Positions 18,101 to 35,759 of a stretch of 64,000 bases of DNA are shown here, piece after piece (the stretch's first letter is position 1; each line of letters opens with the position of its first letter). The DNA lies in the sequence record LR756500.1. One strand, 5' to 3'. The notes beneath the pieces are model-generated. The model was not told where the DNA came from. It ran no database searches and saw only the letters and a program-made list of their open reading frames with translations. The translations under genes were made by a program, and so were the position numbers.

Positions 18101-21100
18101 CTATTTATCTTTTAAAAATTTTTCTAATAAATCTAACATTTCTTCAATTGACCAATTTTTATTTATAAATTTATAACTTCCGTCTTCAGTATCTTCAAAT
18201 GCAGGATAAATATAATACTTATGAATAACTGACACATGATCTTTAGGCTGTATATTAACGCAATAACCTGTATCTTTACAAAGAGCTTCAATTTTTTTAT
18301 CTAGTTCTTTACATTTTTTTCGGCTTTCGGCTTTTTGCCAAAAATTTATAAATGGAATATATTTACCTTCTTCCCATAAAGGATAAGTAATAAAATTTTC
18401 AGATATAAATGGAATTAATTTTTCAATTTGTTTATGTATTTTATTTTGTGCATTTGAATTTTTAATTAAATCATCTTTAATTTCACCTAAATCTTCAAAT
18501 ATATGATTAGGTAAATTTGAATAATTATTTTTTAAATATTCAATTACACTAATTAAATTTGTTCTTTCATTTTTCATTTCATTTTTCATTTAAAAAGTTA
18601 TCATAAATTTCTAAATATTTTTCACTAACACCTTCTATACTATACGGCAAAAAACTTTTATCATATTTTTTCCAATGATTCCAATATTTTTTAACTTGTT
18701 CTTCTAATTTAATATCTTTATCATTAACTTTTCTATGTAAAGACGTGAAAATTATTCCTGACATATCATCAGCGTGAACAATCCCAATAGTATTAAAATA
18801 TTTATGTAAATTACTTTCTTTATTCCATAATCCCTAATTATTTCTAATAGCTGTTCCAAAACCATGATGAATAGTTGAAATAGCATCTGTTTCATTGTTT
18901 TCAGCAAATCTTTTTAATTCAGTTATATCTGTATTTTTTATTAAAGCGNNNNNNNNNNNNNNNNNNNNNNNNNGTTTAATTTCTTTCATAATATGTTCTT
19001 TAATTTTTCATTTCGTATACAGTTTATATTATCACATTGATGTTTTCCTGGTCTAACTAAAGTTAATTTTTCTCCACAATCTCCACATGCATAAATTAAT
19101 TCTAGTTCTGAATCAGCATTAATTATCGTAATTTCTTTTAATAAGTTTTTATTTCTTTGTAAATCTTCTTCTAATCTTTTAATATATGTAGTCATCCTAT
19201 CAATTATATAATTAATTAGTAAATTATCATTTATTAAATTTTTATCAGATGTTGGATATGCAAAATGAAATTTATTACTATATTTATTGATATAGTAATA
19301 AATTTCATTTGAGCATTTTATAATTTTAGTTCCACCGTCTCTTATAGTATCGATAAAGGTTACACTAAAAAATTTACCACCTTTTATTACATATTTTTTA
19401 ATTAATTCTTCTTCCATAATTATCTATCTACTTCTATTATAGCATCCGGATGTTCTATACATGCATTTAAATATTTTTCAATCCATGGAACGAAATGAAT
19501 ATATAATCCCCATCCATTAGATGCATTAAATTGTTCATAAAATTCAGGTCTAGTTTTCATATCTTCTAAACCATTAGTAAGAGGTTCTATTAATTCGCTA
19601 GCTTTGGTTATATTAATTTCTTCAGGCCTCCATAAATGATAATATATTCCAGCCTCAGCTGCCATTTTTCCTAAATTATGTGTAATGTTTTGACCAAAAT
19701 ATATTTCATAATCTTCATATACACTATGACAATGATCACATTCTTTTTTAACTTTTTCTTTACTCTTTAAACTTACATCTAAACTCATAAAATATTTTTA
19801 ATTATACAATAATTCAGTAAGATTATATTCTAATTTATTTCTTTTTTCTAAATCTTTAATAGCTTGTTCAAATCTTTCAGCTGTTAATTCTTTTAAAGAT
19901 GAAATCATAAACCTTTGTGTTATAGTAGTAAATACTTCATAACTACCATCGTTATATTTTCTTATATTGATTCCATCTTTAATATACTCTGTTATTTCTT
20001 CATTCATTATTTGTCCTTTCTTTTTCTTTCTTTTTTTTGTATTGTTCAAATTGTAATGCATCAAATAAATATTCAACACCAAACCATCCGTATAAATCTC
20101 TTAATTTATAATTAAATTTATGAAACTTTAATATTTCATCAATAGTTAATTCAGGTAAATCTCTTTCAATACATCCTTTAAATGAATCAAATCTTGATTT
20201 AAAAGATTCATATTCTCCAACTCCTGATATTAAATATCCATCTCTAGTTTTTCTTATTAAATTTACAAAATCTTCTAAAGACTCTAAATTATCAAAATAT
20301 TTATTATCCATATTAATATGTTATTTTTCCTAAATTAATTAACTCATCTAAAATATTATCTAAGTATAAATCTAAATGTTCTTTAATTCGTTCTTTTAAA
20401 TAAAAATTTTGTTCTTCAAGATTTGCATTATTCCAATTATCTTCATTTACATCTACTTTTATTATTAGTTCATTAAATTTAACTTTTATTTTAAGTTCTT
20501 TTTCCATTTTTTAAATAAGTTTTTTGATATTTTCGTAATTTAATTTTAGATTTAGTACCATCTGCATTAATAACTAAGCAATATTTTTCTATAAAATATA
20601 CAATATTAGATTTACATTTTTCAAATTCTGTCATTATATTATTATTAAAGGTATATTTTCATTTAATTTTGATGCGTCATATCCTATATTAGTTGAATCA
20701 TTACCAGTTACACATTTTATAGGTCTTTCATGAAATAAATACACTGATTTAACTGCAGCTGCTATTAAAAAATATTCTCGCTCAGATAATGTTTCTTTTA
20801 AATTTATAAAATCTGTATTAATCATTAATTGATAATTTTTATCAGATTTAATATCGTAACCTATTAAAATGCAATGATGTAATTTACCTTTATATTTATT
20901 AAACCATTCATCATAAGATAATGAATTTTCCAATAGATATTTTTTAGCAATATCTGCATTATATTTTTTCATTTCTTCTAATGTAATTCCTTTTATGTAA
21001 AATTTACCAACTCCATCAAATGAATATTCTAAACCACCATTCCATATAACTTCATAAAATACTTCATCTTTATTATGTCCTATTGTTCCATATATTTTAT

Positions 21101-23079: not shown

Positions 23080-23649
23080 TTATTTTATAATTTCATCTAT
23101 AACTCCTAATCTAAGGGCTTGTTTACTATTCATAGTCCAATCAATTTTATGAGTGTAAATTTTCTTAAGTTGTTTTTTAGATATTTTAGTTTTTTCAAGA
23201 GTTATTTTCTCAAGAAGTTTTTGTAATCTTTTTGTTTCATAAAACTCTTCTTCCATATCTTTAGCTTTACCCCAGAAACCATTACTTATTTGATGATATA
23301 ATGGTGTTGATAATTCATAACCAAATCTCTTATGTCCATTTATTAATATCATAAATCCGCACGACATAGCACAACCTGTAACAATAGTATAAATAGGTGT
23401 TTTACTTGTATTCATTATAGATAATAAACCAAAACATTGATATACCATTCCTCCATAAGAATCAATATAAATTTTAATTGGTTTACGTTTATATTTAACA
23501 TAATCTATTGCATATACTTTGGTAAGACGATCGTCTTCTTCATTAATTTCAATTATTCTTTCAGTTAATTTACCTATTGATTCTTGATCAACTTGCTTAT
23601 TAAAATACAAATTTCTACCTGTTGGAATTTCTAATTTATTTTCTGCCAT
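23080..23649 (-). CDS. clpP: ClpP-family serine protease
   Basis: IYIDSYGG, GCAMSCG (catalytic Ser), YHQIS (His), ALRLGVIDEII. Confidence 0.85.
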   Translation of the reverse strand: MAENKLEIPTGRNLYFNKQVDQESIGKLTERIIEINEEDDRLTKVYAIDYVKYKRKPIKIYIDSYGGMVYQCFGLLSIMNTSKTPIYTIVTGCAMSCGFMILINGHKRFGYELSTPLYHQISNGFWGKAKDMEEEFYETKRLQKLLEKITLEKTKISKKQLKKIYTHKIDWTMNSKQALRLGVIDEIIK

Positions 23650-23721
23650 AAAATTTTAAATTTATTATTTTATGGAAAATTAATATTTTGTTTAAATAAA
23701 ATTTAATTAATTTAATCTTTA

Positions 23722-23820
23722 TTTCAACATTAAATATTTTTTTAATTTTTTTAACATTGATTGTCCTAAGGCATTCATATTTAATTAATTATATATTATT
23801 ATTTATATATTTATGTTAGC
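23722..23820 (+). repeat. 99-bp element, copy 1 (attI-like site at the end of cassette array 1)
   Basis: 97/99 identical to the reverse complement of 34987-35085; ends in ttatG|TTAGC exactly at the first cassette core. Confidence 0.85.
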
Positions 23821-23827
23821 AACAATA

Positions 23828-24196
23828 CTACAAACCGTACTTCGATTTAAGTTTTTCTAATTGCTCCAACTCAATCTTTTTAATTCTTTCCTTTTCTTGT
23901 CTATCTCGTTCATCTTGTCTTTTTTGGTATTCAATTTCTTCTTGTTCACACGCTTGTTTGTATTCATTTTCAGAAATTAGACCCAAATCAACAAGTGGAT
24001 GGTCGGTATTATCTTTACTATATTGGTTTATATTCACTTCATTTTTTGTGTATCCAAATCCTTCTGTAATATCATTAACAACCAATACTGTAAATGTGTT
24101 ATCTGTAAATTTTAACCATAAATCGCCACAATCTAATTTCAAATCAGAGATTGTTTTTCCTTTCAATTCATTGATATTCTGTATTTCATTTTTCAT
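23828..24196 (-). CDS. cassette 1 ORF, hypothetical
   Basis: Flanked by GTTAGCAACA (23815) and TGTTGCTAAC (24228), 10/10 complementary. Confidence 0.75.
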   Translation of the reverse strand: MKNEIQNINELKGKTISDLKLDCGDLWLKFTDNTFTVLVVNDITEGFGYTKNEVNINQYSKDNTDHPLVDLGLISENEYKQACEQEEIEYQKRQDERDRQEKERIKKIELEQLEKLKSKYGL

Positions 24197-24230
24197 ATTA
24201 TATAAATTAATCGTTTATAATCCGTACTGT

Positions 24231-24338
24231 TGCTAACACATTGTATATGTCGGTTTTGCCAATTGGCTTTTGTGCTTTTGTGCTTTGACTGAGAGTATGT
24301 GCGTGGCAAAACCGAACACATACAACCATTCGTTATAA
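24231..24338 (+). repeat. attC-like site C1
   Basis: TGCTAAC..TTGTATATG-CGGTTTTGCCA..TGGCAAAACCG..CATACAA..GTTATAA. Confidence 0.85.
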
Positions 24339-24353
24339 GTAATAAAATAAAAA

Positions 24354-24518
24354 CTACTTACTACTATTAATATCCTTAATCAAAATTTGAATTTCTTCAT
24401 TTTTATTTTCTAACTCTTTTTCAAATGCTTTTTGAAACTCAAACTTTTGTTCTTCACTTAACTCATTCAAATTTTGAATGTTAGTTTGTCTAATTTCTGC
24501 TTTAATTTTCTTTTCCAT
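24354..24518 (-). CDS. cassette 2 ORF, 54 aa (MEKKIKAEIRQ..., below ORF-track cutoff)
   Basis: Flanked by GTTATAAGTA and TACTTATAAC, 10/10. Confidence 0.6.
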   Translation of the reverse strand: MEKKIKAEIRQTNIQNLNELSEEQKFEFQKAFEKELENKNEEIQILIKDINSSK

Positions 24519-24544
24519 AATTTTACTGTTTTTATTTTACATAC

Positions 24545-24666
24545 TTATAACAACAAATATAAAACATTGCTGATGTAGTTTCTATTTATATTATACGTTT
24601 AATTTCAAGTTTTGTTTCATTTATTTACATTCATGTTGCAACTTTTTATATTTGTAATCGTTATAG
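24545..24666 (+). repeat. attC-like site C2
   Basis: TTATAAC-aa-CAAATATAAAA...TTTTATATTTG-taatc-GTTATAG; the right 60 bp are 56/60 identical to 33957-34016 (inverted). Confidence 0.85.
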
Positions 24667-24675
24667 ATAATAAAA

Positions 24676-24894
24676 TTAAAAATAGTCATGACTATCTATA
24701 AATAACTCCTTATATGTTTCATCAGTAAAAGAAAATCCTCTACCATCAACCGTCATTTCTACAACTTGCATCACTTTTAAGTAATTAATTATTGTGTCAA
24801 GTTCGTCTTCTAATTCTTTACCTATTTTAAACATACTCATAGCTGCCATTATCTCACCAAGTCTTTCAATATTTTCTTTTACTTTCTCATCCAT
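24676..24894 (-). CDS. cassette 3 ORF, hypothetical
   Basis: Flanked by GTTATAGATA and TATCTATAAC, 10/10. Confidence 0.7.
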   Translation of the reverse strand: MDEKVKENIERLGEIMAAMSMFKIGKELEDELDTIINYLKVMQVVEMTVDGRGFSFTDETYKELFIDSHDYF

Positions 24895-24922
24895 ATTAAT
24901 TAGTATTTTTAATTTTACATAT

Positions 24923-25007
24923 CTATAACAACAAATATAAGAAATAAATCTTACTTTGTCTATTTTTTAATGAAAAGATTTACTTCTCATATTTGCAACC
25001 GTTAGGC
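24923..25007 (+). repeat. attC-like site C3
   Basis: CTATAAC-aa-CAAATAT..AAATCTT..AAGATTT..ATATTTG-caacc-GTTAGGC. Confidence 0.85.
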
Positions 25008-25011
25008 ATAA

Positions 25012-25203
25012 TTATACTCTACCACTAAGGTAGTATTCTATTTCACTCTTACTAAAATCATCGGGCTTGTTTTTATAGTACTCCCTTAATTTTCCTTCGT
25101 GAACACCTTGTTCAAATGCCCATTTCATATCATCTAATGAATAACTACGCCTAACAAAGTATAAACGTAATGTTTTCAGTTTTTCAATCAATCTTTTTAT
25201 CAT
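25012..25203 (-). CDS. cassette 4 ORF, hypothetical; start codon lies inside attC C4
   Basis: Cores GTTAGGCATA and TACGCCTAAC (9/10); peptide LRLYFVRRS is encoded by the attC arm. Confidence 0.7.
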   Translation of the reverse strand: MIKRLIEKLKTLRLYFVRRSYSLDDMKWAFEQGVHEGKLREYYKNKPDDFSKSEIEYYLSGRV

Positions 25204-25268
25204 ATTATTAAATTTTGTATTTCAAATTAAGTTCAGTTAAACACTACGTTTATACTCAACTGTTATGG
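25149..25268 (+). repeat. attC-like site C4
   Basis: GCCTAAC-aa-AGTATAAACG...CGTTTATACT-caact-GTTATGG. Confidence 0.8.
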
Positions 25269-25269
25269 T

Positions 25270-25443
25270 TCATGCTAATCGCACAATTTGACGTTCATCT
25301 ACTTGTGAAAAACAATTTTCATTATATGGTTGTCCATCGTACCAAAATGAACTACAGTCCCATCTCGCAACATTCCATCCTTCGTAACTAAAATTATTAG
25401 GGCTAAATAAGTATACCCAATAGTAACCTTCTTTTCTTTCCAT
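25270..25443 (-). CDS. cassette 5 ORF, 57 aa (MERKEGYYWV...)
   Basis: Flanked by GTTATGGTT and AACCATAAC, 9/9; more plausible than track ORF 25299-25586. Confidence 0.65.
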   Translation of the reverse strand: MERKEGYYWVYLFSPNNFSYEGWNVARWDCSSFWYDGQPYNENCFSQVDERQIVRLA

Positions 25444-25489
25444 TTTATTTTTATTTTAAGTTTAACAATCTGATTAATAAAGCACGAAA

Positions 25490-25582
25490 CCATAACATTT
25501 GCTATATGTAACACGGCTGAAAAGTCCGTACTATTTTGAGAATGTCTGCTATGCCGTGCTACACATATCATTTTCGTTATGA
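25490..25582 (+). repeat. attC-like site C5
   Basis: CCATAAC..TATATG..CACGGC...GCCGTG..CATAT..GTTATGA. Confidence 0.8.
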
Positions 25583-25768
25583 ACAATGCTTAACGTCTGC
25601 CAACGCTATGTCATGTCCACATTTTTTACATTTACCAACCATAATTAAGTGGTCGAAAGCATTGTTCATAACACCAAATAAATGAAATTTCTCTATTTCA
25701 TCTATTGTCGGTAGTGCTTTTATTGTTACTTCTATACCACTTGGCAATTTTACTTTCATATTTTTCAT
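25577..25768 (-). CDS. cassette 6 ORF, hypothetical with CxxC; stop codon lies in the core site
   Basis: GTTATGAACA (25576) and TGTTCATAAC (25663), 10/10. Confidence 0.6.
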   Translation of the reverse strand: MKNMKVKLPSGIEVTIKALPTIDEIEKFHLFGVMNNAFDHLIMVGKCKKCGHDIALADVKHCS

Positions 25769-25922
25769 AGTCTATACCCATAGAACAAACCTTTCGCTTC
25801 GCAACACTAACATCAGATATATTCAATTTTTTATTTGTATTATCCAAAGTTTCTTCTAAAATTTTACTCTTTTCCATTTTATTAAATTTTGTGTTAGAAC
25901 TACGTATATGTAATCATTATAG
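25666..25922 (+). repeat. compound or degenerate attC-like site C6 (two AAC half-sites; GTT core mutated to ATT)
   Basis: TCATAAC at 25666, CACTAAC at 25805, ATTATAG at 25916 after the usual -taatc- spacer. Confidence 0.55.
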
Positions 25923-25926
25923 CCAA

Positions 25927-26277
25927 TTAAAGCACTGAATCATAATTGCTGCCTCTATCATCATAATCCCATTTAGAATCAAGCTCATAATATTCTTTTT
26001 TTGATTGTTGGTATTCGATTCCTTTTTGCAATTCTTTAATTTGAGAATTAAGTTTATCTATTTTATTTTGCCTTTGCTCTGAAATGTATTTTTGTGCATC
26101 ATTAACTGTTTTGAAAAATTTGTCGGAAGTCATAGATAAGCATATTCTCCAATTATACTCCGTACCAGCACTACGCAAAGACCTGACAAATGCGTAACTA
26201 TCGGTTAATTTGACGCAATCTCTTTCCCATATTCTAACTAAATCATCCTTTACAATATAAACTTTAAAAAACTCCAT
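25927..26277 (-). CDS. cassette ORF, hypothetical
   Basis: Between C6 and C7; cores ATTATAGCC and GACTATAAC (7/9). Confidence 0.7.
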   Translation of the reverse strand: MEFFKVYIVKDDLVRIWERDCVKLTDSYAFVRSLRSAGTEYNWRICLSMTSDKFFKTVNDAQKYISEQRQNKIDKLNSQIKELQKGIEYQQSKKEYYELDSKWDYDDRGSNYDSVL

Positions 26278-26295
26278 ATCTATAAAATTAACTGA

Positions 26296-26425
26296 CTATA
26301 ACCCGTGGTATGGTTAGTTGCCGTGTTAGTACTAAATTTAAGCGTTACTACCCGCTTGTAATTTTCTGTAATTTGATAGGAAAGTAGCCCGCAATCGGCA
26401 ACTAACCATACAACCAACGTTATGA
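26296..26425 (+). repeat. attC-like site C7
   Basis: CTATAAC..GTATGGTTAGTTGCCG...CGGCAACTAACCATAC..GTTATGA (16-bp perfect arm). Confidence 0.9.
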
Positions 26426-26431
26426 TTAATT

Positions 26432-26611
26432 TTACTCAACCACTTCAAAGTCACCAACATTAATTGGGTGATATACACCCAACCCCTGACATATTGTAAA
26501 TGTTCCATCTTCATTAAATCCTTGATATGGCTCATCCTCTTCAAATATATCACCACTTTTAAATGTTGTCATATACCCCTCATAATCTTTTAGTAATTTA
26601 ATTTTTTTCAT
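26432..26611 (-). CDS. cassette ORF, 59 aa (MKKIKLLKDYEG...)
   Basis: Cores GTTATGATTA and TAACCATAAC (9/10); more plausible than track ORF 26338-26556. Confidence 0.65.
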   Translation of the reverse strand: MKKIKLLKDYEGYMTTFKSGDIFEEDEPYQGFNEDGTFTICQGLGVYHPINVGDFEVVE

Positions 26612-26637
26612 ATTTTAATATTTAAGTAAAAAACTAA

Positions 26638-26731
26638 CCATAACAAGGTGTATAAAACATAACCTAATTACAAATTTTAAATTAACCACGGAACTATAAT
26701 AGGTTATGTTTCATACACCTAACCGTTAGCG
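26638..26731 (+). repeat. attC-like site C8
   Basis: CCATAAC-a-AGGTGTATAAAACATAACCTA...TAGGTTATGTTTCATACACCT-aacc-GTTAGCG. Confidence 0.9.
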
Positions 26732-26948
26732 GTAATTTAATAACAGTATTTTGAGCATCTTCATAGCTTTCAAATATCTTATTACATCTTGGACAAGAAC
26801 AACAACCGTCAACAACGGGTATAGCAAATAATTTTACTAAGTCAAATCGTAATTTTCCACATATTTCTCCTGTCATTTTTATATAATCAAGATTATCGTT
26901 ATCAATTTTTACATCACTTAATAATAAGTGTACTTCTTGTTCTGTCAT
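26694..26948 (-). CDS. cassette ORF, hypothetical; starts inside C9 and reads through into C8
   Basis: LFAIPVVDG is encoded by the attC arm; cores GTTAGCGGT and ACCGTCAAC (7/9). Confidence 0.55.
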   Translation of the reverse strand: MTEQEVHLLLSDVKIDNDNLDYIKMTGEICGKLRFDLVKLFAIPVVDGCCSCPRCNKIFESYEDAQNTVIKLPLTVRCMKHNLL

Positions 26949-27011
26949 ATTTATAAATTTATTAGTTATTACTATTAATTCCGAACTGAGTATATCTGAG
27001 TGTCGTTATAT
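26807..27011 (+). repeat. long degenerate attC-like site C9
   Basis: CGTCAAC..GGGTATAGC ... GTATATCTG..GTTATAT. Confidence 0.5.
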
Positions 27012-27021
27012 GCAATAAAAA

Positions 27022-27156
27022 TTATTTTTTGGATATTTTATATAACATTATAAATCCTATTAAAAAGTGATGGATGTTGTACAATTTGCCATTTCTATCA
27101 ACTTCGCTACAAAAATATCCAAATCCTATTACAAATGGCAAAATCTTTATATTCAT
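27022..27156 (-). CDS. cassette ORF, 44 aa
   Basis: Small ORF between C9 and C10. Confidence 0.45.
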   Translation of the reverse strand: MNIKILPFVIGFGYFCSEVDRNGKLYNIHHFLIGFIMLYKISKK

Positions 27157-27168
27157 AATTTTTACAGT

Positions 27169-27298
27169 TTATAACAACAAATATAAGCAATTATTTTCAT
27201 TACTTCCAAAATAAATGTTGTTTGTTAATATTAATTTTGTTCTTTTAATTAAGTTTCTACTAATTTTACTCAAATGTATATACCTGCAGACGTTAGCT
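27169..27298 (+). repeat. attC-like site C10
   Basis: TTATAAC-aa-CAAATATAAG ... TATATACCTGCAGAC-GTTAGCT. Confidence 0.7.
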
Positions 27299-27303
27299 GC
27301 CAT

Positions 27304-27495
27304 TTAAGGAAGCTCTGTAATAACATAGTTAATAGCCATGTTTATTTCTGTTTCAATTTTAAATCTATACCCATTAAGCTCATAAACATTTTCATCTTTC
27401 ATTTTTTCTAAACTAAACTTTTGCAATAGTTCATAAATCTGCGAAAGTGTAAGATTATTCACGTTGGCTTTTATGTTTAAGTTTATTGTCATCAT
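27304..27495 (-). CDS. cassette ORF, hypothetical
   Basis: Cores GTTAGCTGCC and GGTAGCTAAC (9/10). Confidence 0.65.
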   Translation of the reverse strand: MMTINLNIKANVNNLTLSQIYELLQKFSLEKMKDENVYELNGYRFKIETEINMAINYVITELP

Positions 27496-27508
27496 AATAA
27501 AAAATGGT

Positions 27509-27594
27509 AGCTAACATGATATATAAGCCATACAATGTTAAGGTTTATACTAATTTGATAGTGTCGGGTATGACTTATATACCCATTGTTAGAG
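27509..27594 (+). repeat. attC-like site C11
   Basis: AGCTAAC..TATATAAGCCATAC...GTATGACTTATATA..GTTAGAG. Confidence 0.85.
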
Positions 27595-27598
27595 TGCA

Positions 27599-27793
27599 TT
27601 ATCTAAACACTCCTAAAAAATCTTTTAAGCAACTTTCGTTACATACGTAAAATATTTTATTTCCCTTAAAATAACATTCTGGCACTTTCATTGCTTTATG
27701 CTTTTTAATTTGTTTTTTACAACTTTCACAATTAACGCACTCTAACAAAGTATTAGCGTTATTGCCTTTCTTGCTTTCTGATAAGTTTTCCAC
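27599..27793 (-). CDS. cassette ORF, CxxC hypothetical; start lies inside C12
   Basis: Cores GTTAGAGTGC and GCACTCTAAC, 10/10; GNNANTLLEC is encoded by the attC arm. Confidence 0.7.
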   Translation of the reverse strand: MENLSESKKGNNANTLLECVNCESCKKQIKKHKAMKVPECYFKGNKIFYVCNESCLKDFLGVFR

Positions 27794-27860
27794 ATTTTAT
27801 ATTTTAATGTTGTTAATAATTGTTTGTGATTGCGTTAACTCCAATACTCGACCATTAGGT
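27740..27860 (+). repeat. attC-like site C12 (GTT mutated to ATT)
   Basis: CTCTAAC-aa-AGTATT ... AATACT-cgacc-ATTAGGT. Confidence 0.65.
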
Positions 27861-28049
27861 TCAATCATTAATTTGTTTTGAATCTTCTATCATATTTTTG
27901 ATTCGTTCTTTGAATCTATGTTCGTATTCCTTATCAACTTCACCCAAGTCAGTTGTTTCAAGATATTTTTTAGGTAATCCTTTACCCATAGTTTCCTTGA
28001 GTTTATTTTGAAAATACTCAAGTTCTTCGTTTGTGTTTTTATTTTCCAT
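27861..28049 (-). CDS. cassette ORF, hypothetical
   Basis: Cores ATTAGGTT and AACCTAAC (7/8). Confidence 0.6.
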   Translation of the reverse strand: MENKNTNEELEYFQNKLKETMGKGLPKKYLETTDLGEVDKEYEHRFKERIKNMIEDSKQIND

Positions 28050-28091
28050 ATTTTATATTTTTTTACAAAGGTAAAACAAATTAATGACAAA

Positions 28092-28145
28092 ACCTAACAA
28101 ATGATAAACAACATTAAAACATTCGTTTATCTGCAACCGTTATAA
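28092..28145 (+). repeat. short attC-like site C13 (54 bp)
   Basis: ACCTAAC-aaat-GATAAAC...GTTTATC-tgcaacc-GTTATAA. Confidence 0.8.
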
Positions 28146-28155
28146 AACAGTTTGC

Positions 28156-28302
28156 TTAAAAAAGTTTTCCACATTTTATACATCTAACCAAATAAGCACC
28201 AACCTCAAACTTTTCAAATTCGTGTTTGCAAACAGATTTTATAACAGGTATATCCAATTGCTTTTTTTGTTTTCTAAATAAACATTTTCACAATTTTTTC
28301 AT
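28156..28302 (-). pseudogene. cassette ORF with TGA at codon 5 (MKKL*KCLFRKQKKQLDIPVIKSVCKH...)
   Basis: Cores GTTATAAAA and TTTTATAAC, 9/9; starts inside C14. Confidence 0.5.
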
Positions 28303-28362
28303 CTTGTATTTCAATTTAATTTTTACTAATTTTACGCAACTATATACCTGCAGCCTTTATAG
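28239..28362 (+). repeat. attC-like site C14 (GTT mutated to TTT)
   Basis: TTATAAC-a-GGTATAT..TTGC...GCAA..ATATACC-tgcagcc-TTTATAG. Confidence 0.65.
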
Positions 28363-28563
28363 TGCATTAAGGAAGTCCTCAGCATCCTTCACACTAAAGC
28401 ATTTTGTGAATTTACCTGTATTTTCATTCAACACTATTACAAAATCAACTGCTCCGTAATTAAATGCCAATTTAGTTGCTTCAATATCAAACACACATAA
28501 AGCATTATACTTTGGTATTACGGGTTGACAATCTGAATATTTTTTATCTAAAATTCTTAACAT
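28357..28563 (-). CDS. cassette ORF, hypothetical
   Basis: Cores TTTATAGT and ACTATAAC (7/8). Confidence 0.6.
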   Translation of the reverse strand: MLRILDKKYSDCQPVIPKYNALCVFDIEATKLAFNYGAVDFVIVLNENTGKFTKCFSVKDAEDFLNAL

Positions 28564-28582
28564 AGTTTTAAGTATTAACTTA

Positions 28583-28677
28583 CTATAACAATGTGTATAT
28601 GTAATGCAGCCAATAAGTTAATTGTAAATTGAAAGTATATGCAAGACAAACCGACATCATACCGCCAGCCATTATAG
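28583..28677 (+). repeat. attC-like site C15 (GTT mutated to ATT)
   Basis: CTATAAC..TGTATATGTAATG ... CATCATAC..cagcc-ATTATAG. Confidence 0.6.
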
Positions 28678-28681
28678 CCAA

Positions 28682-28840
28682 TTAAAAAGTAACACCATTA
28701 TCATATCCAACCTCTATTGATATATTTTCAATTTCAGTATTTAATATTTGTGCTATCTTTTCTTTTAGTTCGATTATCTTGGTTACATCAATCATTACAT
28801 CTTTGTAAACAGAAATTGAAATTAGTTCTTTTTCATTCAT
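28682..28840 (-). CDS. cassette ORF, 52 aa
   Basis: Small ORF between C15 and C16. Confidence 0.5.
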   Translation of the reverse strand: MNEKELISISVYKDVMIDVTKIIELKEKIAQILNTEIENISIEVGYDNGVTF

Positions 28841-28848
28841 ATTATCTA

Positions 28849-28880
28849 AGCAAACATTCTCATATACTTAACCATTATAG
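28849..28880 (+). repeat. collapsed attC remnant C16
   Basis: CATATACTT-aacc-ATTATAG retains only the right arm and a mutated core. Confidence 0.4.
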
Positions 28881-28889
28881 ATAATGAAA

Positions 28890-29180
28890 TTAAATATCCT
28901 TAAAAAGTCTTCTTGGTGCTACTAATCTTCTACCATCATCACATTTAATAATATATTCACCATCAGGTTCTATAACAGTATCTAAAACATTATAAATATT
29001 ACCAACTGTTATTGGAAAATTTGGGTTTGGATTTTCCGTACATAGAACTTGTTTAAGCATAAACTTATTATTAAATGTTCCATAAATATCTGAATTAACT
29101 ATTTTAATTTCACTATCTATAGCATCAGATATATGTAATTTTTCATCTTTTTTCATAATACTATTTTTATTAGTTAACAA
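28890..29180 (-). CDS. cassette ORF, hypothetical; starts inside C17
   Basis: Cores ATTATAGATA and TATCTATAGC (8/10); LHISDAIDS is encoded by the attC arm. Confidence 0.6.
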   Translation of the reverse strand: MLTNKNSIMKKDEKLHISDAIDSEIKIVNSDIYGTFNNKFMLKQVLCTENPNPNFPITVGNIYNVLDTVIEPDGEYIIKCDDGRRLVAPRRLFKDI

Positions 29181-29205
29181 AACAACTTAATACGCCTTGT
29201 TATGT
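29117..29205 (+). repeat. degenerate terminal attC-like site C17
   Basis: CTATAGC..GATATATGTAAT ... GTTATGT overlapping the 3' end of the MazG-like gene. Confidence 0.45.
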
Positions 29206-29600
29206 TTGTACGCCCTTGTTTGATTATAGAGCATTTTCAATTCGATATGCTTTTCAATATCAATGTTTCTTTGTCCTATAAAATCGAGCAATCTAATAAA
29301 TACGTCTGCAATTTCATCTTCAAAAGTATCCTTTACCTGAGTTCTGAAAATTTCCTCAAACTTTATCATATCGTTTTCTTTTGCTGCCAAATCTAAATCT
29401 TCTCGAATAGTTTTGCCGTCAATAATAAATTCAGCATCATCAATTTTGGCATATTGTCCTTTTCTATCAGCTTCCAAAGCCTCAGATAATTCAGAAACCA
29501 TAAGCATTAATAAAGTACCTGTTTCTCTTGGTTCGTCCCAAAAACCCTTTGCCTTTGCTCTTTCATGAAAATGTTTTGCTAATTCGTTTAAATTATTCAT
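29187..29600 (-). CDS. MazG-like nucleotide pyrophosphohydrolase
   Basis: LMVSELSEALEADRK and EDEIADVFIRLLD (ExxE...ExxD), C-terminal YKHNK. Confidence 0.85.
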   Translation of the reverse strand: MNNLNELAKHFHERAKAKGFWDEPRETGTLLMLMVSELSEALEADRKGQYAKIDDAEFIIDGKTIREDLDLAAKENDMIKFEEIFRTQVKDTFEDEIADVFIRLLDFIGQRNIDIEKHIELKMLYNQTRAYKHNKAY

Positions 29601-30658: not shown

Positions 30659-32079
30659 TCAAATTTATAATTGCCTGTTCCAAAACATCTATANNNNNNN
30701 NNNNNNNNNNNNNNNNNNNNNNNNNNNNNNNNNNNNNNNNNNNNNNNNNNNNNNNNNNNNNNNNNNNNNNNNNNNNNNNNNNNNNNNNNNNNNNNNNNNN
30801 NNNNNNNNNNNNNNNNNNNNNNNNNNNNNNNNNNNNNNNNNNNNNNNNNNNNNNNNNNNNNNNNNNNNNNNNNNNNNNNNNNNNNNNNNNNNNNNNNNNN
30901 NNNNNNNNNNNNNNNNNNNNNNNNNNNNNNNNNNNNNNNNNNNNNNNNNNNNNNGGCTCCACCAACAACCGAAGTATTTAATTTATTAGCAAACCGTAAA
31001 AGCTCCCATTCATTTTCTTTAGCAACTTGATTTAAATTTTTACGTAAGGATCCGAAGGTCATTAATGATACTAACTCACCTTCATAATATAAACCTAATT
31101 TAATAGCAGCATTAGTATTGCCCTGTAAATGGTTCCTATTTAAAAATTCTCTACTATCACCAGAATTAACGGTTTTAATTACACATTTTCTAGCATACAC
31201 TTTATCAGTAGATAAATTTAATAAATTCTTTATTCTTGATTTTACTATATCTCTTTTGTTATACCAAACATCTTCCCATATATGTATTAAATTAATTCCC
31301 AATTCTTTGCATCTATTACTTTTATCTATATGATATTCTTTAGGTTTATTAAATTCATTATGCCAATATACTCCATTATGTTCAAATGCTATATTTTTAT
31401 CTTCAATATAAATATCAAGTTCTCTATTTTTTAATTCTTTTTTAGAATTAATTCTAAATGGTTTTAAATAAATGTCTTTTATCCAATCTATTAATTCTAT
31501 TTCAGAATTACTTTTTCCGTGATTAGGATTACATTTTAAACATGGATTAATATTTATATTTATTCTTCTATATAATAATTGAGAATCTATTATTGATATA
31601 CTTTTACATTCAACACATTCTATTTTTATTTTTTGTTGATCATCCCATTCTATTATTTTAATTTTATCTTTTAATTTTTCTTTAGCAAAAGGAAAATAAT
31701 ATTTATCTTTAAAATAATTTGATTGTGTTATATGTTGTACTCCATATCTTTTTAGAACTGTTATTCTTGTTCTTTTTTCTTTTAAAACTATTGCACATTT
31801 TCTACTACAGCTAGAAGAATAACCAGGCATTATACCCATAAATTTAGATGAAGGTATTTTATTACCACATACTTCACATTTTGGAATTTCAGTTTTATCA
31901 TGTAATGCATGATAAAGTTTTTCTTTAAAAGACGTTAATTTTAGATTATTATTTATAGAATATTTTTCTATTTCTAATAATAGATTAGGATAATTATTTT
32001 TAAAAAATTCAATTCTAGTAGTACTAGATGTAAGTTTTCCGTTTTTTATTAATATTTTATTTAAATCATTTGATAACAT
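30643..32079 (-). CDS. Hef-like homing endonuclease (Zn ribbons, Vsr/PD-(D/E)xK-like nuclease, GNAT-like C-terminus); contains an N gap at 30694-30954
   Basis: ELDIYIEDKNIAFEHNGVYWH, LIHIWEDVW, ARKC..FLNRNHLQG, WELLRFA. Confidence 0.7.
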   Translation of the reverse strand: MLSNDLNKILIKNGKLTSSTTRIEFFKNNYPNLLLEIEKYSINNNLKLTSFKEKLYHALHDKTEIPKCEVCGNKIPSSKFMGIMPGYSSSCSRKCAIVLKEKRTRITVLKRYGVQHITQSNYFKDKYYFPFAKEKLKDKIKIIEWDDQQKIKIECVECKSISIIDSQLLYRRINININPCLKCNPNHGKSNSEIELIDWIKDIYLKPFRINSKKELKNRELDIYIEDKNIAFEHNGVYWHNEFNKPKEYHIDKSNRCKELGINLIHIWEDVWYNKRDIVKSRIKNLLNLSTDKVYARKCVIKTVNSGDSREFLNRNHLQGNTNAAIKLGLYYEGELVSLMTFGSLRKNLNQVAKENEWELLRFANKLNTSVVGGAXXXXXXXXXXXXXXXXXXXXXXXXXXXXXXXXXXXXXXXXXXXXXXXXXXXXXXXXXXXXXXXXXXXXXXXXXXXXXXXXXXXXXXXYRCFGTGNYKFEWKLK

Positions 32080-33160: not shown

Positions 33161-33316
33161 ATGAAAAACGAAGACAACTTTGAAAGAAAAGCTGCACAGC
33201 GAATAATCGAAGCACTAACAGATGAAAATAATTTGAATATACCCCCAGTTATCGTTTCAATTTGCGATGGTCTTTTGTTTGAATGTACTGATAGAGAAAC
33301 AATACATAACGAATGA
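33161..33316 (+). CDS. cassette ORF, 51 aa
   Basis: LNIPPVIVS is encoded by the half-site (GTTATCG at 33248). Confidence 0.5.
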   Translation: MKNEDNFERKAAQRIIEALTDENNLNIPPVIVSICDGLLFECTDRETIHNE

Positions 33317-33437
33317 TGCGTTTATTCTCGTTGCCGTATTAGGAGCAGAAATTATTAACCATAAAATAAACACAATATGAAAAAAGGAACTTCAAATAAG
33401 CAGAAAGCAGGCAATAGAATTAAACGCAATGTTATAA
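33304..33437 (-). repeat. attC-like site D1
   Basis: ACATAAC..TGCGTTTATTCTCGTTGCC...GGCAATAGAATTAAACGCA-at-GTTATAA. Confidence 0.8.
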
Positions 33438-33604
33438 AATTGTTGCCCGACCGGAGAATTTATGATGAATACACATTTATAATTGGAAGTATGCAACACG
33501 GAACATCCTACATGGGTAAATCGGACGAAACTATAAAACACCACGACAATATAATCGCATGGCTTAAAAAACGTAGAGAGGAGTTTAAGGGCAATGTTTT
33601 ATAA
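33377..33604 (+). CDS. cassette ORF, hypothetical; starts inside D1 and stops in the next core
   Basis: Cores GTTATAAAA and TTTTATAAC, 9/9. Confidence 0.65.
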   Translation: MKKGTSNKQKAGNRIKRNVIKLLPDRRIYDEYTFIIGSMQHGTSYMGKSDETIKHHDNIIAWLKKRREEFKGNVL

Positions 33605-33731
33605 CGGACGGCGGTTGGCTTTCGTTGCCGATGCTCGATTAACGACAAATGATTATTAATAGTAAAAATTTAAAATTATGCAGACAGATTCTAAAAACCA
33701 AATAGGCAATGAAGCTAATACCATGTTATGT
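33599..33731 (-). repeat. attC-like site D2
   Basis: TTATAAC..GGTTGGCTTTCGTTGCC...GGCAATGAAGCTAATACC-at-GTTATGT. Confidence 0.8.
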
Positions 33732-33905
33732 GAAGTGTATTTTGTAAAAAAAGGTAAAAAGTTTATGAAAGGACATGGATATAGCACATTAAAAGGATAT
33801 AAATTTAGTTGGACTTTCAATAAAAACGAAGCAAGAAAAATGGAATATAGCACAGCAAATAGTTTAGCAATTTCAAGCGGTGGTGTATTGAAACAACAAC
33901 TATAA
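33678..33905 (+). CDS. cassette ORF, hypothetical; starts inside D2
   Basis: GNEANTMLCEV is encoded by the attC arm. Confidence 0.65.
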   Translation: MQTDSKNQIGNEANTMLCEVYFVKKGKKFMKGHGYSTLKGYKFSWTFNKNEARKMEYSTANSLAISSGGVLKQQL

Positions 33906-33952
33906 ATGGTCAATTAGTAGAAATTCCACGCTACGACCCTCTTTATTATTGT

Positions 33953-34067
33953 GGCTAACGGTTGCAAATATAAAACGTTGCAACATGAATGTAATTAAAT
34001 GAAACAAAACTTGAAAAAATGCTCGAATAACCACGGATGCCCAACTGTTTTATACCATATGTTAGCG
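33953..34067 (-). repeat. attC-like site D3
   Basis: GGCTAAC..TATAAAAC...GTTTTATA..GTTAGCG; body shared with C2. Confidence 0.85.
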
Positions 34068-34103
34068 GTAGTGATTTTTTAACTTATTAATATTTAACGA
34101 TTT

Positions 34104-34991
34104 ATGAAAACAAAAAGATTTGATAGTTCAGAAGGTAATGTTTGGAAATATGTATTTGACTTTGAAAATGCAGTTGCCGAAGCGGTACTTTACAAATATG
34201 AAAACTTTTACAAAAGGACTGTACTTTGCGTGAGTGTGCAAAGTGGATGCCCTGTTGGTTGCAAATTTTGCGGAACTGGCAAAAAGTTTATTAGAAACCT
34301 TACAAACTTAGAAATAGTTGCACAGGTTAAACATTGCTTAAAAGACATGAATATTGAAAATGTTAATTCGGCTAGTGATCGTTTCCAAATAATGTTTATG
34401 AGTATGGGTGAACCTACTTTAAATATTGATAATGTAATAACGGCAATAAAGGATTTAAACAACTTATATCCAAATGCTGAATTACTTATTTCAACTATGG
34501 GGGCAAAAAACAATACCGCTTTTGAAAAACTGTTAAAAGTAAGTATTGAAATACAAAAGGTTGGTTTGCAATTTTCAGTACATGAAGCATTTGAAGAAAA
34601 AAGAAACCAATTAATATCATTTAAAAATAAATTGAATTTACGTGAAATGCGTGATTTTGGCATTGAGTGGAATAGGCAAACAAAACGCCCTGTATATGTG
34701 AATTATTGCATTGGAGAAACAAACCAAAGCAATGAAGAGATGGATAGGCTTAAAGACTTATTTAGCCCTGCTCTTTTCAATTTTACATTTTCGGTTATTT
34801 GCTCTTCTGATGAAAACATGAAAGATAAAGGATATAGAGAACTGAACAAGATAAACACAATTACTTCATCATTTGTTGAATGTGGTTATAATGTTCGAGT
34901 TTTCGACCCTGCTGGTCAAGATGATATTGGGGGCGGGTGCGGACAATTATGGTATGTACAAAACTGGATGCGTGACCATCATTACCGCTAA
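34104..34991 (+). CDS. RlmN/Cfr-family radical SAM methyltransferase carried as a gene cassette
   Basis: LCVSVQSGCPVGCKFC, FMSMGEP, DIGGGCGQL; cores GTTAGCGGTA and TACCGCTAAC, 10/10. Confidence 0.85.
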   Translation: MKTKRFDSSEGNVWKYVFDFENAVAEAVLYKYENFYKRTVLCVSVQSGCPVGCKFCGTGKKFIRNLTNLEIVAQVKHCLKDMNIENVNSASDRFQIMFMSMGEPTLNIDNVITAIKDLNNLYPNAELLISTMGAKNNTAFEKLLKVSIEIQKVGLQFSVHEAFEEKRNQLISFKNKLNLREMRDFGIEWNRQTKRPVYVNYCIGETNQSNEEMDRLKDLFSPALFNFTFSVICSSDENMKDKGYRELNKINTITSSFVECGYNVRVFDPAGQDDIGGGCGQLWYVQNWMRDHHYR

Positions 34992-35085
34992 CATAAATAT
35001 ATAAATAATAATATATAATTAATTAAATATGAATGCCTTAGGACAATCAATGTTAATAAAATTTAAAAAATATTTAATGTTGAAA
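34987..35085 (-). repeat. 99-bp element, copy 2 (attI-like site at the end of array 2)
   Basis: 97/99 identical to the reverse complement of 23722-23820; contains TATAAATA facing the LRR gene. Confidence 0.85.
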
Positions 35086-35108
35086 AATTATTTAATTTTA
35101 TAAAATAA

Positions 35109-35759
35109 ATGGAATATAACGATAAAAATGGATTAGAATTAATAGCTGAATTAGCTAAAGTTAGTACTGATAAGCTAATGAATTTAACTATTTTAATACT
35201 AAGTAGTAATAAATTGACTTCTATACCAAAAGAGATAGGATTACTTACTAATTTAAGAGAATTACGTTTATCCAATAATGAATTAACATCTGTACCAAAA
35301 GAGATAGGAAATTTGGTAAATTTACAACATTTACATTTAAATAGTAATAAATTAACTTCTATACCATTAGAAATATTTAATCTTATAAAATTAACTAAAT
35401 TATTATTATATAGTAATAAATTGACTTCTATACCAAAAGAGATAGGAAATTTAATAAATTTACAGCGTTTATTTTTAAGTTATAATGCATTGACTTCATT
35501 ACCTAAAGAGATAGGAAATTTGGTAAATTTATGTGAATTACTATATACAAATACTAAGATGGTTTCAATACCTATTGAGTTAGTTAAGTTAAATGTTTTT
35601 CCAAAGTTAGATTTATCAGAATTAACTCTGCCGTTATGGGCTGAATTATTTCAAGAAGATAAATTTAAAGTTATTAAGCATAAAGATTTTCCAAAAGATT
35701 TAAGAAATCATCCATGGTTTATTGATGTAGCTTATGCAGATGATTTTGGACTTATTTAA
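35109..35759 (+). CDS. leucine-rich repeat protein
   Basis: About six 23-aa repeats LTSIPKEIGNLxNLxxLxLxxN, with DNA-level repeats TTGACTTCTATACCAAAAGAGATAGGA. Confidence 0.9.
   Translation: MEYNDKNGLELIAELAKVSTDKLMNLTILILSSNKLTSIPKEIGLLTNLRELRLSNNELTSVPKEIGNLVNLQHLHLNSNKLTSIPLEIFNLIKLTKLLLYSNKLTSIPKEIGNLINLQRLFLSYNALTSLPKEIGNLVNLCELLYTNTKMVSIPIELVKLNVFPKLDLSELTLPLWAELFQEDKFKVIKHKDFPKDLRNHPWFIDVAYADDFGLI

Follow-up and report, generated by a model that had tools for sequence, protein, structure and literature searches.

Integron-like gene-cassette arrays in a large uncultured phage that lacks an intact copy of the associated recombinase gene

Integrons, and in particular the sedentary chromosomal integrons and the CALINs, are the closest described relatives of the arrangement reported here (PMC4889954; PMC9892861). 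They consist of arrays of promoter-poor, mostly single-gene cassettes that are co-oriented and separated by imperfect palindromes with AAC/GTT cores and a variable loop. The core flanks of each cassette are complementary to each other, and a tyrosine recombinase of the Xer/IntI branch is encoded beside a simple insertion site that is not a hairpin. Hairpins are homogeneous within a lineage, as with Vibrio repeats, and loss of the integrase leaves CALIN-like arrays. The arrangement reported here shares these features. CALINs with two or more attC sites have been reported in phages, and five of six phage attC sites that were tested were recombined by IntI1 (PMC9892861).

Three other systems are also relevant for comparison. 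In Treponema-type integrons the integrase is transcribed in the same direction as the cassettes (PMC3607928). The enzymes of those integrons are true IntI proteins encoded upstream of the array, next to attI. Xer recombinases (XerA, XerCD) can use folded single-strand sites and can flank gene modules, as illustrated by IMEX elements such as CTX phage and by the pdif modules of Acinetobacter plasmids. Finally, the PeSL regulatory cassettes of T4-type phages are stem-loop repeats that flank small accessory genes in the variable regions of large phages. These are promoter-terminator units that are shuffled by homologous recombination, and both modular gene gain and loss and the formation of mini-circles have been linked to them (PMC2839356; PMC4122927).

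We examined a window of 64,000 nucleotides from sequence record LR756500.1, a 429-kb record of an uncultured phage whose GenBank record spans 462 kb. A preliminary description based on sequence alone had noted about 17 attC-like palindromes between positions 23815 and 29205, each separating one small ORF, and had proposed that the phage acquires genes through an integron-type system. The observation is confirmed by our analysis. Read on the minus (coding) strand, the intergenic stretches have the layout xxxTAAC, about 5 nt, stem, variable loop, stem, about 2 nt, GTTAxxx. Profile HMMs built only from hairpins of other viral contigs yield 19 hits in the 429-kb record, all in three clusters. Fourteen significant hits, with E-values from 2e-3 to 5e-19, form the first array, three form a second and inverted array in the window, and two lie outside the window (Table 1). 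About four more junctions in the first array are degenerate, with cores mutated to TAAT or TAAA or with a weak stem, and the earlier figure of about 17 is therefore reasonable. However, several longest-ORF calls run into degenerate hairpins, so the statement that each palindrome separates one ORF is only approximate.

Table 1. Coordinates of the array features, numbered from the first letter of the 64,000-nucleotide window. Designations beginning with L are loci fetched for comparison; hairpin classes are named by length, and E-values are from nhmmer searches.
Position	Strand	Feature	Supporting observations
23815-29205	-	Array 1, about 18 co-directional cassettes	Runs from the first degenerate TAAC core (29205) to the terminal core (23815-23818)
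23828-29180	-	Cassette ORFs of array 1: 28890-29180, 28682-28840, 28357-28563, 28156-28257 (doubtful), 27861-28049, 27599-27793, 27304-27495, 27022-27156, 26694-26948, 26432-26611, 25927-26277, 25698-25877, 25577-25768, 25270-25443, 25012-25203, 24676-24894, 24354-24518, 23828-24196	Most have no family match; phrog_33653 (3e-47) for 23828-24196, phrog_13655 for 25270-25443, DUF7244 for 28890-29180, weak zf-FCS for 27599-27793; several 5' ends overlap degenerate hairpins
29123-29205	-	First, degenerate hairpin-derived junction	R' core mutated to GCTA
28841-28889		Degenerate junction	
28584-28677	-	Hairpin, 88-nt class	E=2.6e-8; 5' core degenerate (TAAT)
28243-28355	-	Hairpin remnant, 115-nt class	E=2.2e-3; 5' core degenerate (TAAA)
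28092-28144	-	Hairpin, 48-nt class	E=1.9e-10; 87-88% identical to hairpins in L298, L339, L299
27743-27862	-	Degenerate hairpin	5' core TAAT; R' core at 27737-27746 pairs 10/10 with 27588-27597
27508-27592	-	Hairpin, 88-nt class	E=2e-5
27168-27300	-	Hairpin, 115-nt class	E=4.8e-13; stem partly decayed; 88% identical to L269/L172
26949-27021		Degenerate junction	
26639-26733	-	Hairpin, 88-nt class	E=1.5e-5; 20-bp stem
26297-26425	-	Hairpin, 126-nt class	E=4.1e-7; 91% identical to L255; 85% over 59 nt to a bacterial element in L423
25807-25909	-	Degenerate hairpin, 115-nt class	E=6.2e-9; 5' core TAAT; start of ORF 25698-25877 lies in its loop; 82-85% identical to L245, L202, L305
25664-25726	-	Partial hairpin (3' half only)	E=1.7e-3; R' core pairs 16/16 with 25576-25591
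25491-25581	-	Hairpin, 88-nt class	E=5.9e-4
25147-25268	-	Hairpin, 115-nt class	E=1.5e-14; 93% identical to a hairpin in a recombinase-linked array (L213/L289)
24923-25007	-	Hairpin, 79-nt class	E=5.5e-19; 96% identical to L216
24544-24667	-	Hairpin, 115-nt class	E=1.7e-16; 90-93% identical to L199, L271
24331-24568	-	Cassette shared with another viral contig	95% identical to L234 7814-8051; likeness ends at the TAAC core, and the hairpin bodies on either side differ
24230-24340	-	Hairpin, last complete one of array 1	E=6.8e-4
23779-23821	-	Terminal, attI-like site	TAAC core (23815-23818 on the plus strand), then AT-rich sequence and no hairpin
23719-23778	-	19-codon ORF, possibly the 5' stub of the deleted recombinase gene	Position and reading; resembles recombinase N-termini, not statistically significant on its own
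33305-33435	+	Array 2, hairpin 1, 126-nt class	E=1.1e-6; a 75-codon ORF (33377-33604) starts in its loop and ends in the next TAAC core
33599-33732	+	Array 2, hairpin 2	E=2.2e-6; 5' core flank pairs 9/9 with the 3' core flank of hairpin 1; ORF 33678-33905 starts in its loop
33951-34069	+	Array 2, hairpin 3	E=2.6e-9
34104-34991	+	Radical-SAM gene, last cassette of array 2	Pfam PF04055; flanking cores pair 12/13; stop codon lies in the terminal TAAC
34989-35103	+	Terminal module of array 2: TAAC site plus 24-codon stub ORF (35029-35103)	Nearly identical to the end of array 1 from the core onward and unlike it before the core

The variable bases beside the GTTA core on one side of an ORF pair with those beside the TAAC core on its other side. 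Perfect runs of 9-16 nt occur at 23815/24237, 24332/24551, 24660/24929, 25262/25496, 25576/25672, 27588/27746 and 28139/28245. The preliminary description had held that complementarity no better than in shuffled pairings would count against its proposal. Over 13 cassettes of the window, 5.23 of the six variable positions next to the 4-nt core pair, compared with 2.34 +/- 0.38 for shuffled pairings, and none of 20,000 shuffles reaches the observed value. The two cores of one and the same hairpin give only 2.0. Likewise, over 308 cassettes from many contigs, 5.47 of eight positions pair, against 2.88 +/- 0.07 for shuffled pairings and 2.79 for the two cores of one hairpin. This pairing extends at least 11 nt and includes a conserved G:T at position 7. 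Within the hairpins, 17 of 18 stem pairs show compensatory changes, and one G-U/T pair is kept in 35 of 40 sequences. It should be recognized that the hairpin set was seeded with a motif taken from this window, that our scanner required TAAC/GTTA, and that the profile HMMs built from this set partly overlap the recombinase loci.

Related viral loci reveal the probable partner of these hairpins. In 67 distinct loci found by protein homology to the recombinase, 315 hairpins, all co-oriented, lie upstream of a gene for a 265-268 amino acid Xer/XerA-like tyrosine recombinase, and 11 lie downstream. A hairpin is present within 1.5 kb upstream in 49 of 55 loci. The catalytic residues R..K..HxxR..H..Y are invariant, and the closest sequence relatives of the enzyme are XerA, XerD and XerC (NF040815 at 184 bits; PDB 4a8e at E=1e-37). 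A conserved TAAC site lies upstream of every recombinase gene, at a distance of about 50 nt. The window belongs to this family because its hairpins are 83-96% identical to hairpins of recombinase-linked arrays, and because one of its cassettes is shared with L234, although the upstream hairpin in L234 is only partly shared.

Comparison of related genomes shows cassette turnover exactly at the core. Loci L336 and L337 are 99.98% identical over 10.85 kb from the TAAC upstream of the recombinase gene onward and are unrelated before it. Loci L339 and L340 are 100% identical over 1229 nt in the same way, and L346 and L347 show a cassette replacement between conserved flanks. Breakpoints fall mainly at the TAAC core on the 5' side of the hairpin, although some similarity blocks also end at the GTTA core. 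Hairpin bodies are linked to the downstream ORF rather than the upstream ORF in nine pairs against one, and ORFs often start inside the loop of the preceding hairpin. However, hairpin bodies form conserved families that occur with unrelated ORFs (1470 of 1481 pairs), and therefore homologous exchange between hairpins may add to the shuffling. Contigs of the source sample show the array colinear, with no excision joints, but this is weak evidence because contigs hide rare forms.

No intact tyrosine recombinase was found in this phage. A search for PF00589 returned no match in the 429-kb record or in the 462-kb GenBank record. The preliminary description had suggested that the enzyme is encoded elsewhere in the genome or borrowed from the host, but the genome holds only remnants. 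At record position 311324-311536, tblastn gives E=1e-16 for residues 36-111 joined to the C-terminal tail. This internally deleted copy, whose catalytic domain is missing, abuts a third small array of two hairpins outside the window. Both window arrays end in the same terminal site plus a short possible stub of the gene. The 15-mer TAACATAAATATATA occurs twice in the record, once at the end of each window array, and in 5.6 Mb of fetched loci it occurs only 47 nt upstream of the recombinase start in L336/L337.

The interpretation offered in the preliminary description is thus partly supported. These are gene cassettes bounded at AAC/GTT cores, and each carries its own complementary core flanks, as expected of units that pass through a circular form with a folded hairpin site. 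Unlike in integrons, however, the associated enzyme in relatives lacks the IntI-specific insertion, and by the IntegronFinder definition (PMC4889954) this is not an integron. Furthermore, the recombinase gene is immediately downstream of the array and co-oriented with it rather than upstream and divergent, and breakpoints are mainly at TAAC rather than at G|TT of R', as had been supposed. Relative to integrons, the hairpin precedes its ORF, the unpaired spacer is 5 nt rather than 2 nt, the core stem is long (4 plus at least 11 pairs, with a fixed G:T), and the carriers are huge phages. In comparison with Treponema-type integrons, the recombinase gene here follows the last cassette. Among Xer systems, no 28-bp dif-like site with two arms and a 6-8 bp spacer was seen here, where the sites are instead 48-130 nt hairpins in long one-way arrays.

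We consider it likely, though not certain, that both window arrays are cassette arrays of an integron-like gene-capture system found in large phages and, in a related form, in Bacteroidota chromosomes. We found no description of this system in the literature searched, and it looks like a phage counterpart of the bacterial integron. In this view, each mobile unit would consist of a hairpin body, a GTTA core with its flank, an ORF, and a flank ending in a TAAC core. As a circle, its two flanks would pair to complete a long hairpin site, TAAC...GTTA plus at least 11 flank pairs. The recombinase would join the TAAC core of a folded hairpin to the simple TAAC site upstream of its own gene, such that new cassettes would enter hairpin-first, next to the recombinase, with polarity opposite to that of integrons. 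The folded substrate is probably the coding (top) strand, because conserved G-T pairs exist only on that strand, but G-U-compatible pairs on this strand would also fit a role in RNA. The anatomy, the clustering, the core complementarity, the link to the recombinase gene, the breakpoints at TAAC and the absence of an intact recombinase from this phage rest directly on the sequence comparisons. In contrast, catalysis by the recombinase, the circular intermediate, single-strand folding, the strand that is cut and the order of events are inferred from sequence alone. On this evidence, with several cores decayed to TAAT or TAAA, the arrays are now frozen, CALIN-like stores of small accessory genes. 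Activity in this phage could only come in trans, from a co-infecting relative or from a Bacteroidota host that carries homologous recombinases and hairpins.

An alternative is that this is a canonical CALIN, captured from or serviced by a bacterial integron, whose hairpins are ordinary attC sites cut at G|TT of R' by a host IntI, as first proposed. The attC-like layout, the own-core complementarity, the precedent of phage CALINs and partial matches of TIGR02249 to the related recombinases are consistent with this idea. Nevertheless, we regard it as unlikely. The recombinases tied to these hairpins lack about 48 amino acids where IntI4 has its specific insertion and score below the IntI cut-offs (151 against 265 bits). 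The gene position, the breakpoints and the order of hairpin and ORF described above also argue against it, as does the 5-nt spacer, which shows no evident extrahelical-base pattern.

A slightly less probable possibility is that the hairpins are regulatory modules, such as terminators, RNA-processing elements or promoter-plus-stem-loop units like the PeSLs, and that genes are shuffled by homologous recombination between these repeats without a dedicated recombinase. The hairpin bodies are indeed conserved families, 83-96% identical between unrelated cassettes, the G-U-compatible pairs lie on the transcribed strand, and this genome has no intact recombinase. However, homologous exchange within repeats cannot create cassette-specific complementary flanks outside the repeat. 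Breakpoints fall at a 4-nt core, including at a terminal site that has no hairpin, and the position and orientation relative to a tyrosine recombinase gene are strict. There is also no T-run after the hairpins and no excess of sigma-70-type promoter matches (43 against 41 +/- 6.3) or terminator matches (3 against 1.1), none of which lie on the hairpins.

Very unlikely is a spread of REP/MITE-like or IS200/IS605-type subterminal hairpins by a transposase, because even though an OrfB_IS605/TnpB-like ORF is present in the window at 7375-8340 and HUH transposases recognize imperfect hairpins, the hairpins occur only in three tight co-oriented clusters with none near the TnpB gene, no TnpA was noticed among the proteins scanned (which did not involve a directed search for the Y1 family), the flanking complementarity spans ORFs rather than the ends of the element, and the consistent partner is a tyrosine recombinase.

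The window examined here corresponds to bases 176865-240864 of a 429,198-bp IMG/VR virus record with a G+C content of 24% and an estimated completeness of 96%. The same sequence is 100% identical to GenBank record LR756500.1, an uncultured phage of 462,018 bp, and the source sample is a groundwater metagenome. Genes in the 23-33 kb region are on the minus strand, and array 1 lies between a ClpP-like gene and a gene for a 137-aa protein. Two masked stretches remained as N in the copy of the record that was analyzed. The coordinates of all features discussed are collected in the table at the end of this section.

The array noted in the preliminary description is real. When read on the minus (coding, or "top") strand, each intergenic element has the order variable flank, TAAC, about 5 nt, a stem of 11-21 bp, loop, stem, about 2 nt, GTTA, and variable flank. 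This is the R''-L''-loop-L'-R' layout of an imperfect palindrome with AAC/GTT cores, as expected for attC sites, which are conserved in structure rather than in sequence. A MAFFT alignment of the eight clearest hairpins in the window was too ragged to support a covariance model, and a search of Rfam at gathering thresholds identified no family in the window. We used a structure scanner and profile HMMs built from hairpins of other contigs. A strict scan of the whole record finds such structures almost only in this region, and the profile HMMs give 19 hits in 429 kb, of which 14 lie in array 1, three in a second, inverted array within the window, and two outside the window. About four more junctions in array 1 are degenerate, with cores mutated to TAAT, TAAA, or GCTA.

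The preliminary description had reported that the core on one side of an ORF is complementary to that on its other side, and had stated that its interpretation would be refuted if complementarity were no better than in shuffled pairings. Complementarity is strong. Runs of 9-16 nt occur, and across 13 cassettes 5.23 of 6 variable positions pair, whereas shuffled pairings give 2.34 +/- 0.38 and the two cores of one hairpin give 2.0. The refuting condition is thus directly contradicted by the data.

A large family of such elements exists elsewhere. A 17-nt motif from two window hairpins retrieved viral contigs that hold arrays of up to 16 such hairpins, which means that the hairpin set was seeded from this window. 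These hairpins share the same 5/2-nt spacer asymmetry and fall into discrete length classes of 48, 79, 88, 115, and 126 nt. Over 308 cassettes from these contigs, the flank after GTTA of one hairpin pairs with the flank before TAAC of the next at 5.47 of 8 positions, compared with 2.88 +/- 0.07 for shuffled pairings and 2.79 for the same hairpin. Pairing runs for at least 11 nt, with a fixed G:T at position 7. In an alignment of 40 diverse hairpins, 17 of 18 stem pairs show compensatory changes, and one G-U/T pair is kept in 35 of 40 sequences. These findings indicate that a folded single strand is under selection, and this is probably the coding strand because the opposite strand would carry A-C mismatches. 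The G-T (G-U) pairs at alignment columns 33/85 and 28/90 and at core flank position 7 are conserved on the coding strand only, which implies strand-specific folding but would also be compatible with a function in RNA. The hairpins of the window are 83-96% identical to members of this family.

Two of five array-bearing records had a PF00589 gene directly beside the array, and the encoded protein was used to fetch 80 viral loci. Among 67 distinct loci, 315 hairpins lie upstream of the gene, all on its strand, and 11 lie downstream. A hairpin is present within 1.5 kb upstream in 49 of 55 loci. The protein is 265-268 aa in length with invariant catalytic residues. It scores 184-186 bits on NF040815 (XerA/integron integrase) against a cut-off of 220, and far below the XerC and XerD cut-offs. 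With the integron integrase models it scores 151 bits on TIGR02249, in two pieces, against a cut-off of 265, and 104 bits on NF011946 against a cut-off of 435. The archaeal XerA-type structure PDB 4a8e is matched at E=1e-37. The protein also aligns to IntI4 (2a3v) in two pieces, with 29 aa where IntI4 has 77, and this is the region of the IntI-specific insertion. By the accepted definition, which requires PF00589 plus the IntI-specific additional domain (intI_Cterm) (PMC4889954), it is not an IntI.

Every recombinase gene is preceded at about 35-55 nt by a conserved TAAC followed by AT-rich sequence, with no hairpin, and pairs of near-identical genomes among the fetched loci diverge exactly there. 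Loci L336 and L337 are 99.98% identical over 10.85 kb from the TAAC onwards and unrelated before it, and loci L339 and L340 are 100% identical over 1229 nt in the same way. Loci L346 and L347 differ by a replaced cassette block between conserved flanks, with one edge at a hairpin's TAAC. Likewise, similarity blocks most often start or stop at TAAC, and hairpin bodies travel with the downstream ORF in nine cases and with the upstream ORF in one. In array 2 and elsewhere the ORF starts inside the loop of the preceding hairpin, and some stop codons lie in the next TAAC. One window cassette is 95% identical to one in L234, another viral contig, and the likeness ends at the TAAC core.

From these observations we infer a unit consisting of hairpin body, GTTA flank, ORF, flank, and TAAC, which would be inserted at the terminal TAAC next to the recombinase. 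This polarity is the reverse of that of integrons, where the attC follows its ORF and crossover is at G|TT of R'. A minority of similarity blocks also end at GTTA, and so the model is not exclusive. The evidence is entirely computational. The hairpin anatomy, its clustering, the flank complementarity, the link to the recombinase gene, and the breakpoints at TAAC are observed directly in the sequences, whereas catalysis by the recombinase, a circular intermediate, single-strand folding, the strand and position of cleavage, and the order of events are inferred.

In this phage, no tyrosine recombinase is detectable by PF00589 in either record, including the extra 33 kb present only in the GenBank copy. 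Array 1 ends at a TAAC followed by a 15-mer that occurs in this record only at the ends of arrays 1 and 2. In 5.6 Mb of fetched loci, the same 15-mer occurs only at the pre-recombinase site of L336/L337. From the core onwards, the two array ends are nearly identical for about 100 nt, but before the core they differ. Each carries a short ORF (19 or 24 codons) whose start resembles recombinase N-termini. This likeness is not significant alone: A profile of the recombinase 5' region found nothing in the record, and an ungapped test of the 19-codon ORF gave 30 of 57 matches, which is reached by about 10% of ATG-started 57-mers. The interpretation of this ORF as a possible stub of the recombinase gene therefore rests on its position, on its duplication at both array ends, and on the shared 15-mer. 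Array 2 has three hairpins, and its last cassette is a radical-SAM gene flanked by cores that pair at 12 of 13 positions. Outside the window, two hairpins abut a recombinase remnant (E=1e-16) that keeps residues 36-111 joined to the C-terminal tail and has lost the catalytic domain.

With several mutated cores, the arrays look like relics, a decayed state in which they have outlived their recombinase. Contigs of the source groundwater sample and of two soil metagenomes showed the array colinear, other contigs carrying only single hairpins, and one uninformative joint, with no sign in these assembled sequences of circles or deletions at cores. The two soil metagenomes, which come from other studies, hold short contigs 90-99% identical to scattered parts of array 1, so close relatives or shared cassettes occur outside groundwater. 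Synteny through the flanking genes was not informative. ClpP relatives (at most 67% identical) have no arrays next to them, and the 90%-identical MazG-like gene found in L081, an unrelated 4.5-kb viral contig with 33% G+C, sits next to terminase-like genes and proved to be a false lead for cassette comparison. The ORFs of the cassettes are mostly 50-120 aa with no known function, and only a few match PHROG families of unknown function, DUF7244, or a weak zinc-finger model.

Homologs of the enzyme, about 40-48% identical, occur in many Bacteroidota genomes, including Flavobacterium limicola, Algoriphagus, and Pseudopedobacter. They pass NF040815 at 221-229 bits and, in loci L439, L432, L423, L410, L419, L402, and others, have 126-nt-class hairpins of the same family downstream on the opposite strand, between co-directional ORFs. 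This looks like a chromosomal counterpart with a different gene orientation. Direct blastn of the arrays against the Bacteroidota loci gave only one short hit, and the link to bacteria rests on the profile hits. It points to Bacteroidota hosts and to a possible source of recombinase in trans.

The interpretation offered in the preliminary description, that the phage acquires genes through an integron-type system with re-integration at G|TT, is partly supported. The hairpins have the attC layout, and an attI-like simple site does lie next to the recombinase gene in relatives. However, that gene lies downstream of the array and is co-oriented with it, rather than upstream and divergent with attI and the Pc promoter in between, and breakpoints fall at the 5' TAAC core. 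Clusters of 14 and three hairpins without a recombinase have the structure of CALINs, in which two or more attC sites lie close together with no integrase nearby, although these hairpins were counted by our own profiles rather than by the standard attC model. CALINs with two or more attC sites have been reported in phages, and IntI1 recombined five of six tested sites (PMC9892861).

PeSL cassettes, in which an early promoter consensus plus a terminator-type stem-loop flank each ORF, are known in T4-type phages. The present hairpins do not fit this description, as a scan for sigma-70-type signals found no excess of promoter-like or terminator-like sites and none on the hairpins, and no T-run follows GTTA. 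A link between the hairpins and the TnpB-like gene of the window was rejected on the distribution of the hairpins.

In the literature searched, we found no report of hairpin arrays tied to a Xer-like recombinase in phages. A survey of tyrosine recombinases notes that the IntI insertion is not fully conserved in its "integron-like" subgroup (PMC8138268). Integrons are the textbook example of a dedicated gene-capture machine and are defined by IntI and its extra domain. This case suggests the same logic of folded hairpin sites, cassettes, and an adjacent insertion site, but run by a simpler Xer-like enzyme, with reversed polarity, on the genomes of very large phages. A bolder possibility, which we consider about as likely as not, is that this is a widespread gene-capture platform of huge phages and Bacteroidota and a mirror-image cousin of the integron. 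In this view, a short Xer/XerA-like recombinase without the IntI domain would insert circular cassettes hairpin-first at a TAAC site just upstream of its own gene, using the coding strand as the folded substrate. The platform would have arisen either independently of IntI or as the pre-IntI state of integron evolution.

If confirmed, such a system would give phages their own means of stockpiling and exchanging small accessory genes, which are candidates for anti-defense or host-takeover functions, and would link phage and Bacteroidota gene pools through shared hairpins. It would also make the step from Xer to IntI in integron evolution directly testable, explain a class of hypervariable regions in huge-phage genomes, and flag a blind spot of integron finders that require the IntI domain.

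Features of the window and of the surrounding record (window coordinates unless marked as record positions)
Position	Strand	Feature	Remarks
7375-8340	+	321-aa OrfB_IS605/TnpB-like ORF	PF01385, 2.5e-23; no TnpA noticed nearby; not near any hairpin cluster
18949-18973		Masked stretch (N)
23080-23649		ClpP-like gene	Flanks array 1
23712-27921		Region matched by the soil metagenome contigs
23815-23818	-	Terminal TAAC of array 1	Plus-strand coordinates
24230-28677	-	14 profile HMM hits (array 1)
24331-24568	-	Cassette shared with L234
29162-29623		Region matching L081 143-599	84% identical in DNA; likeness stops at the gene's edges, so the gene has moved between phages by itself
29187-29600	-	137-aa gene	Flanks array 1; protein 90% identical to that in L081
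30643-32079	-	478-codon ORF, partly masked	Visible part gives only a weak REase_MTES_1575 match
30694-30954		Masked stretch (N)	Within the 478-codon ORF
33305-34069	+	Three profile HMM hits (array 2)
33305-35103	+	Array 2, including its terminal module
34104-34991	+	Radical-SAM gene	Appears to be a cassette
35109-35759	+	Leucine-rich-repeat protein gene	LRR_4, 3e-22; right after the terminal module of array 2
36310-37458	-	Radical-SAM gene	Also carries a lysine-2,3-aminomutase C-terminal domain
Record 311324-312142		Two hairpins followed by the recombinase remnant	Locus L296 8325-9143
Record 311710-312142		Two profile HMM hits
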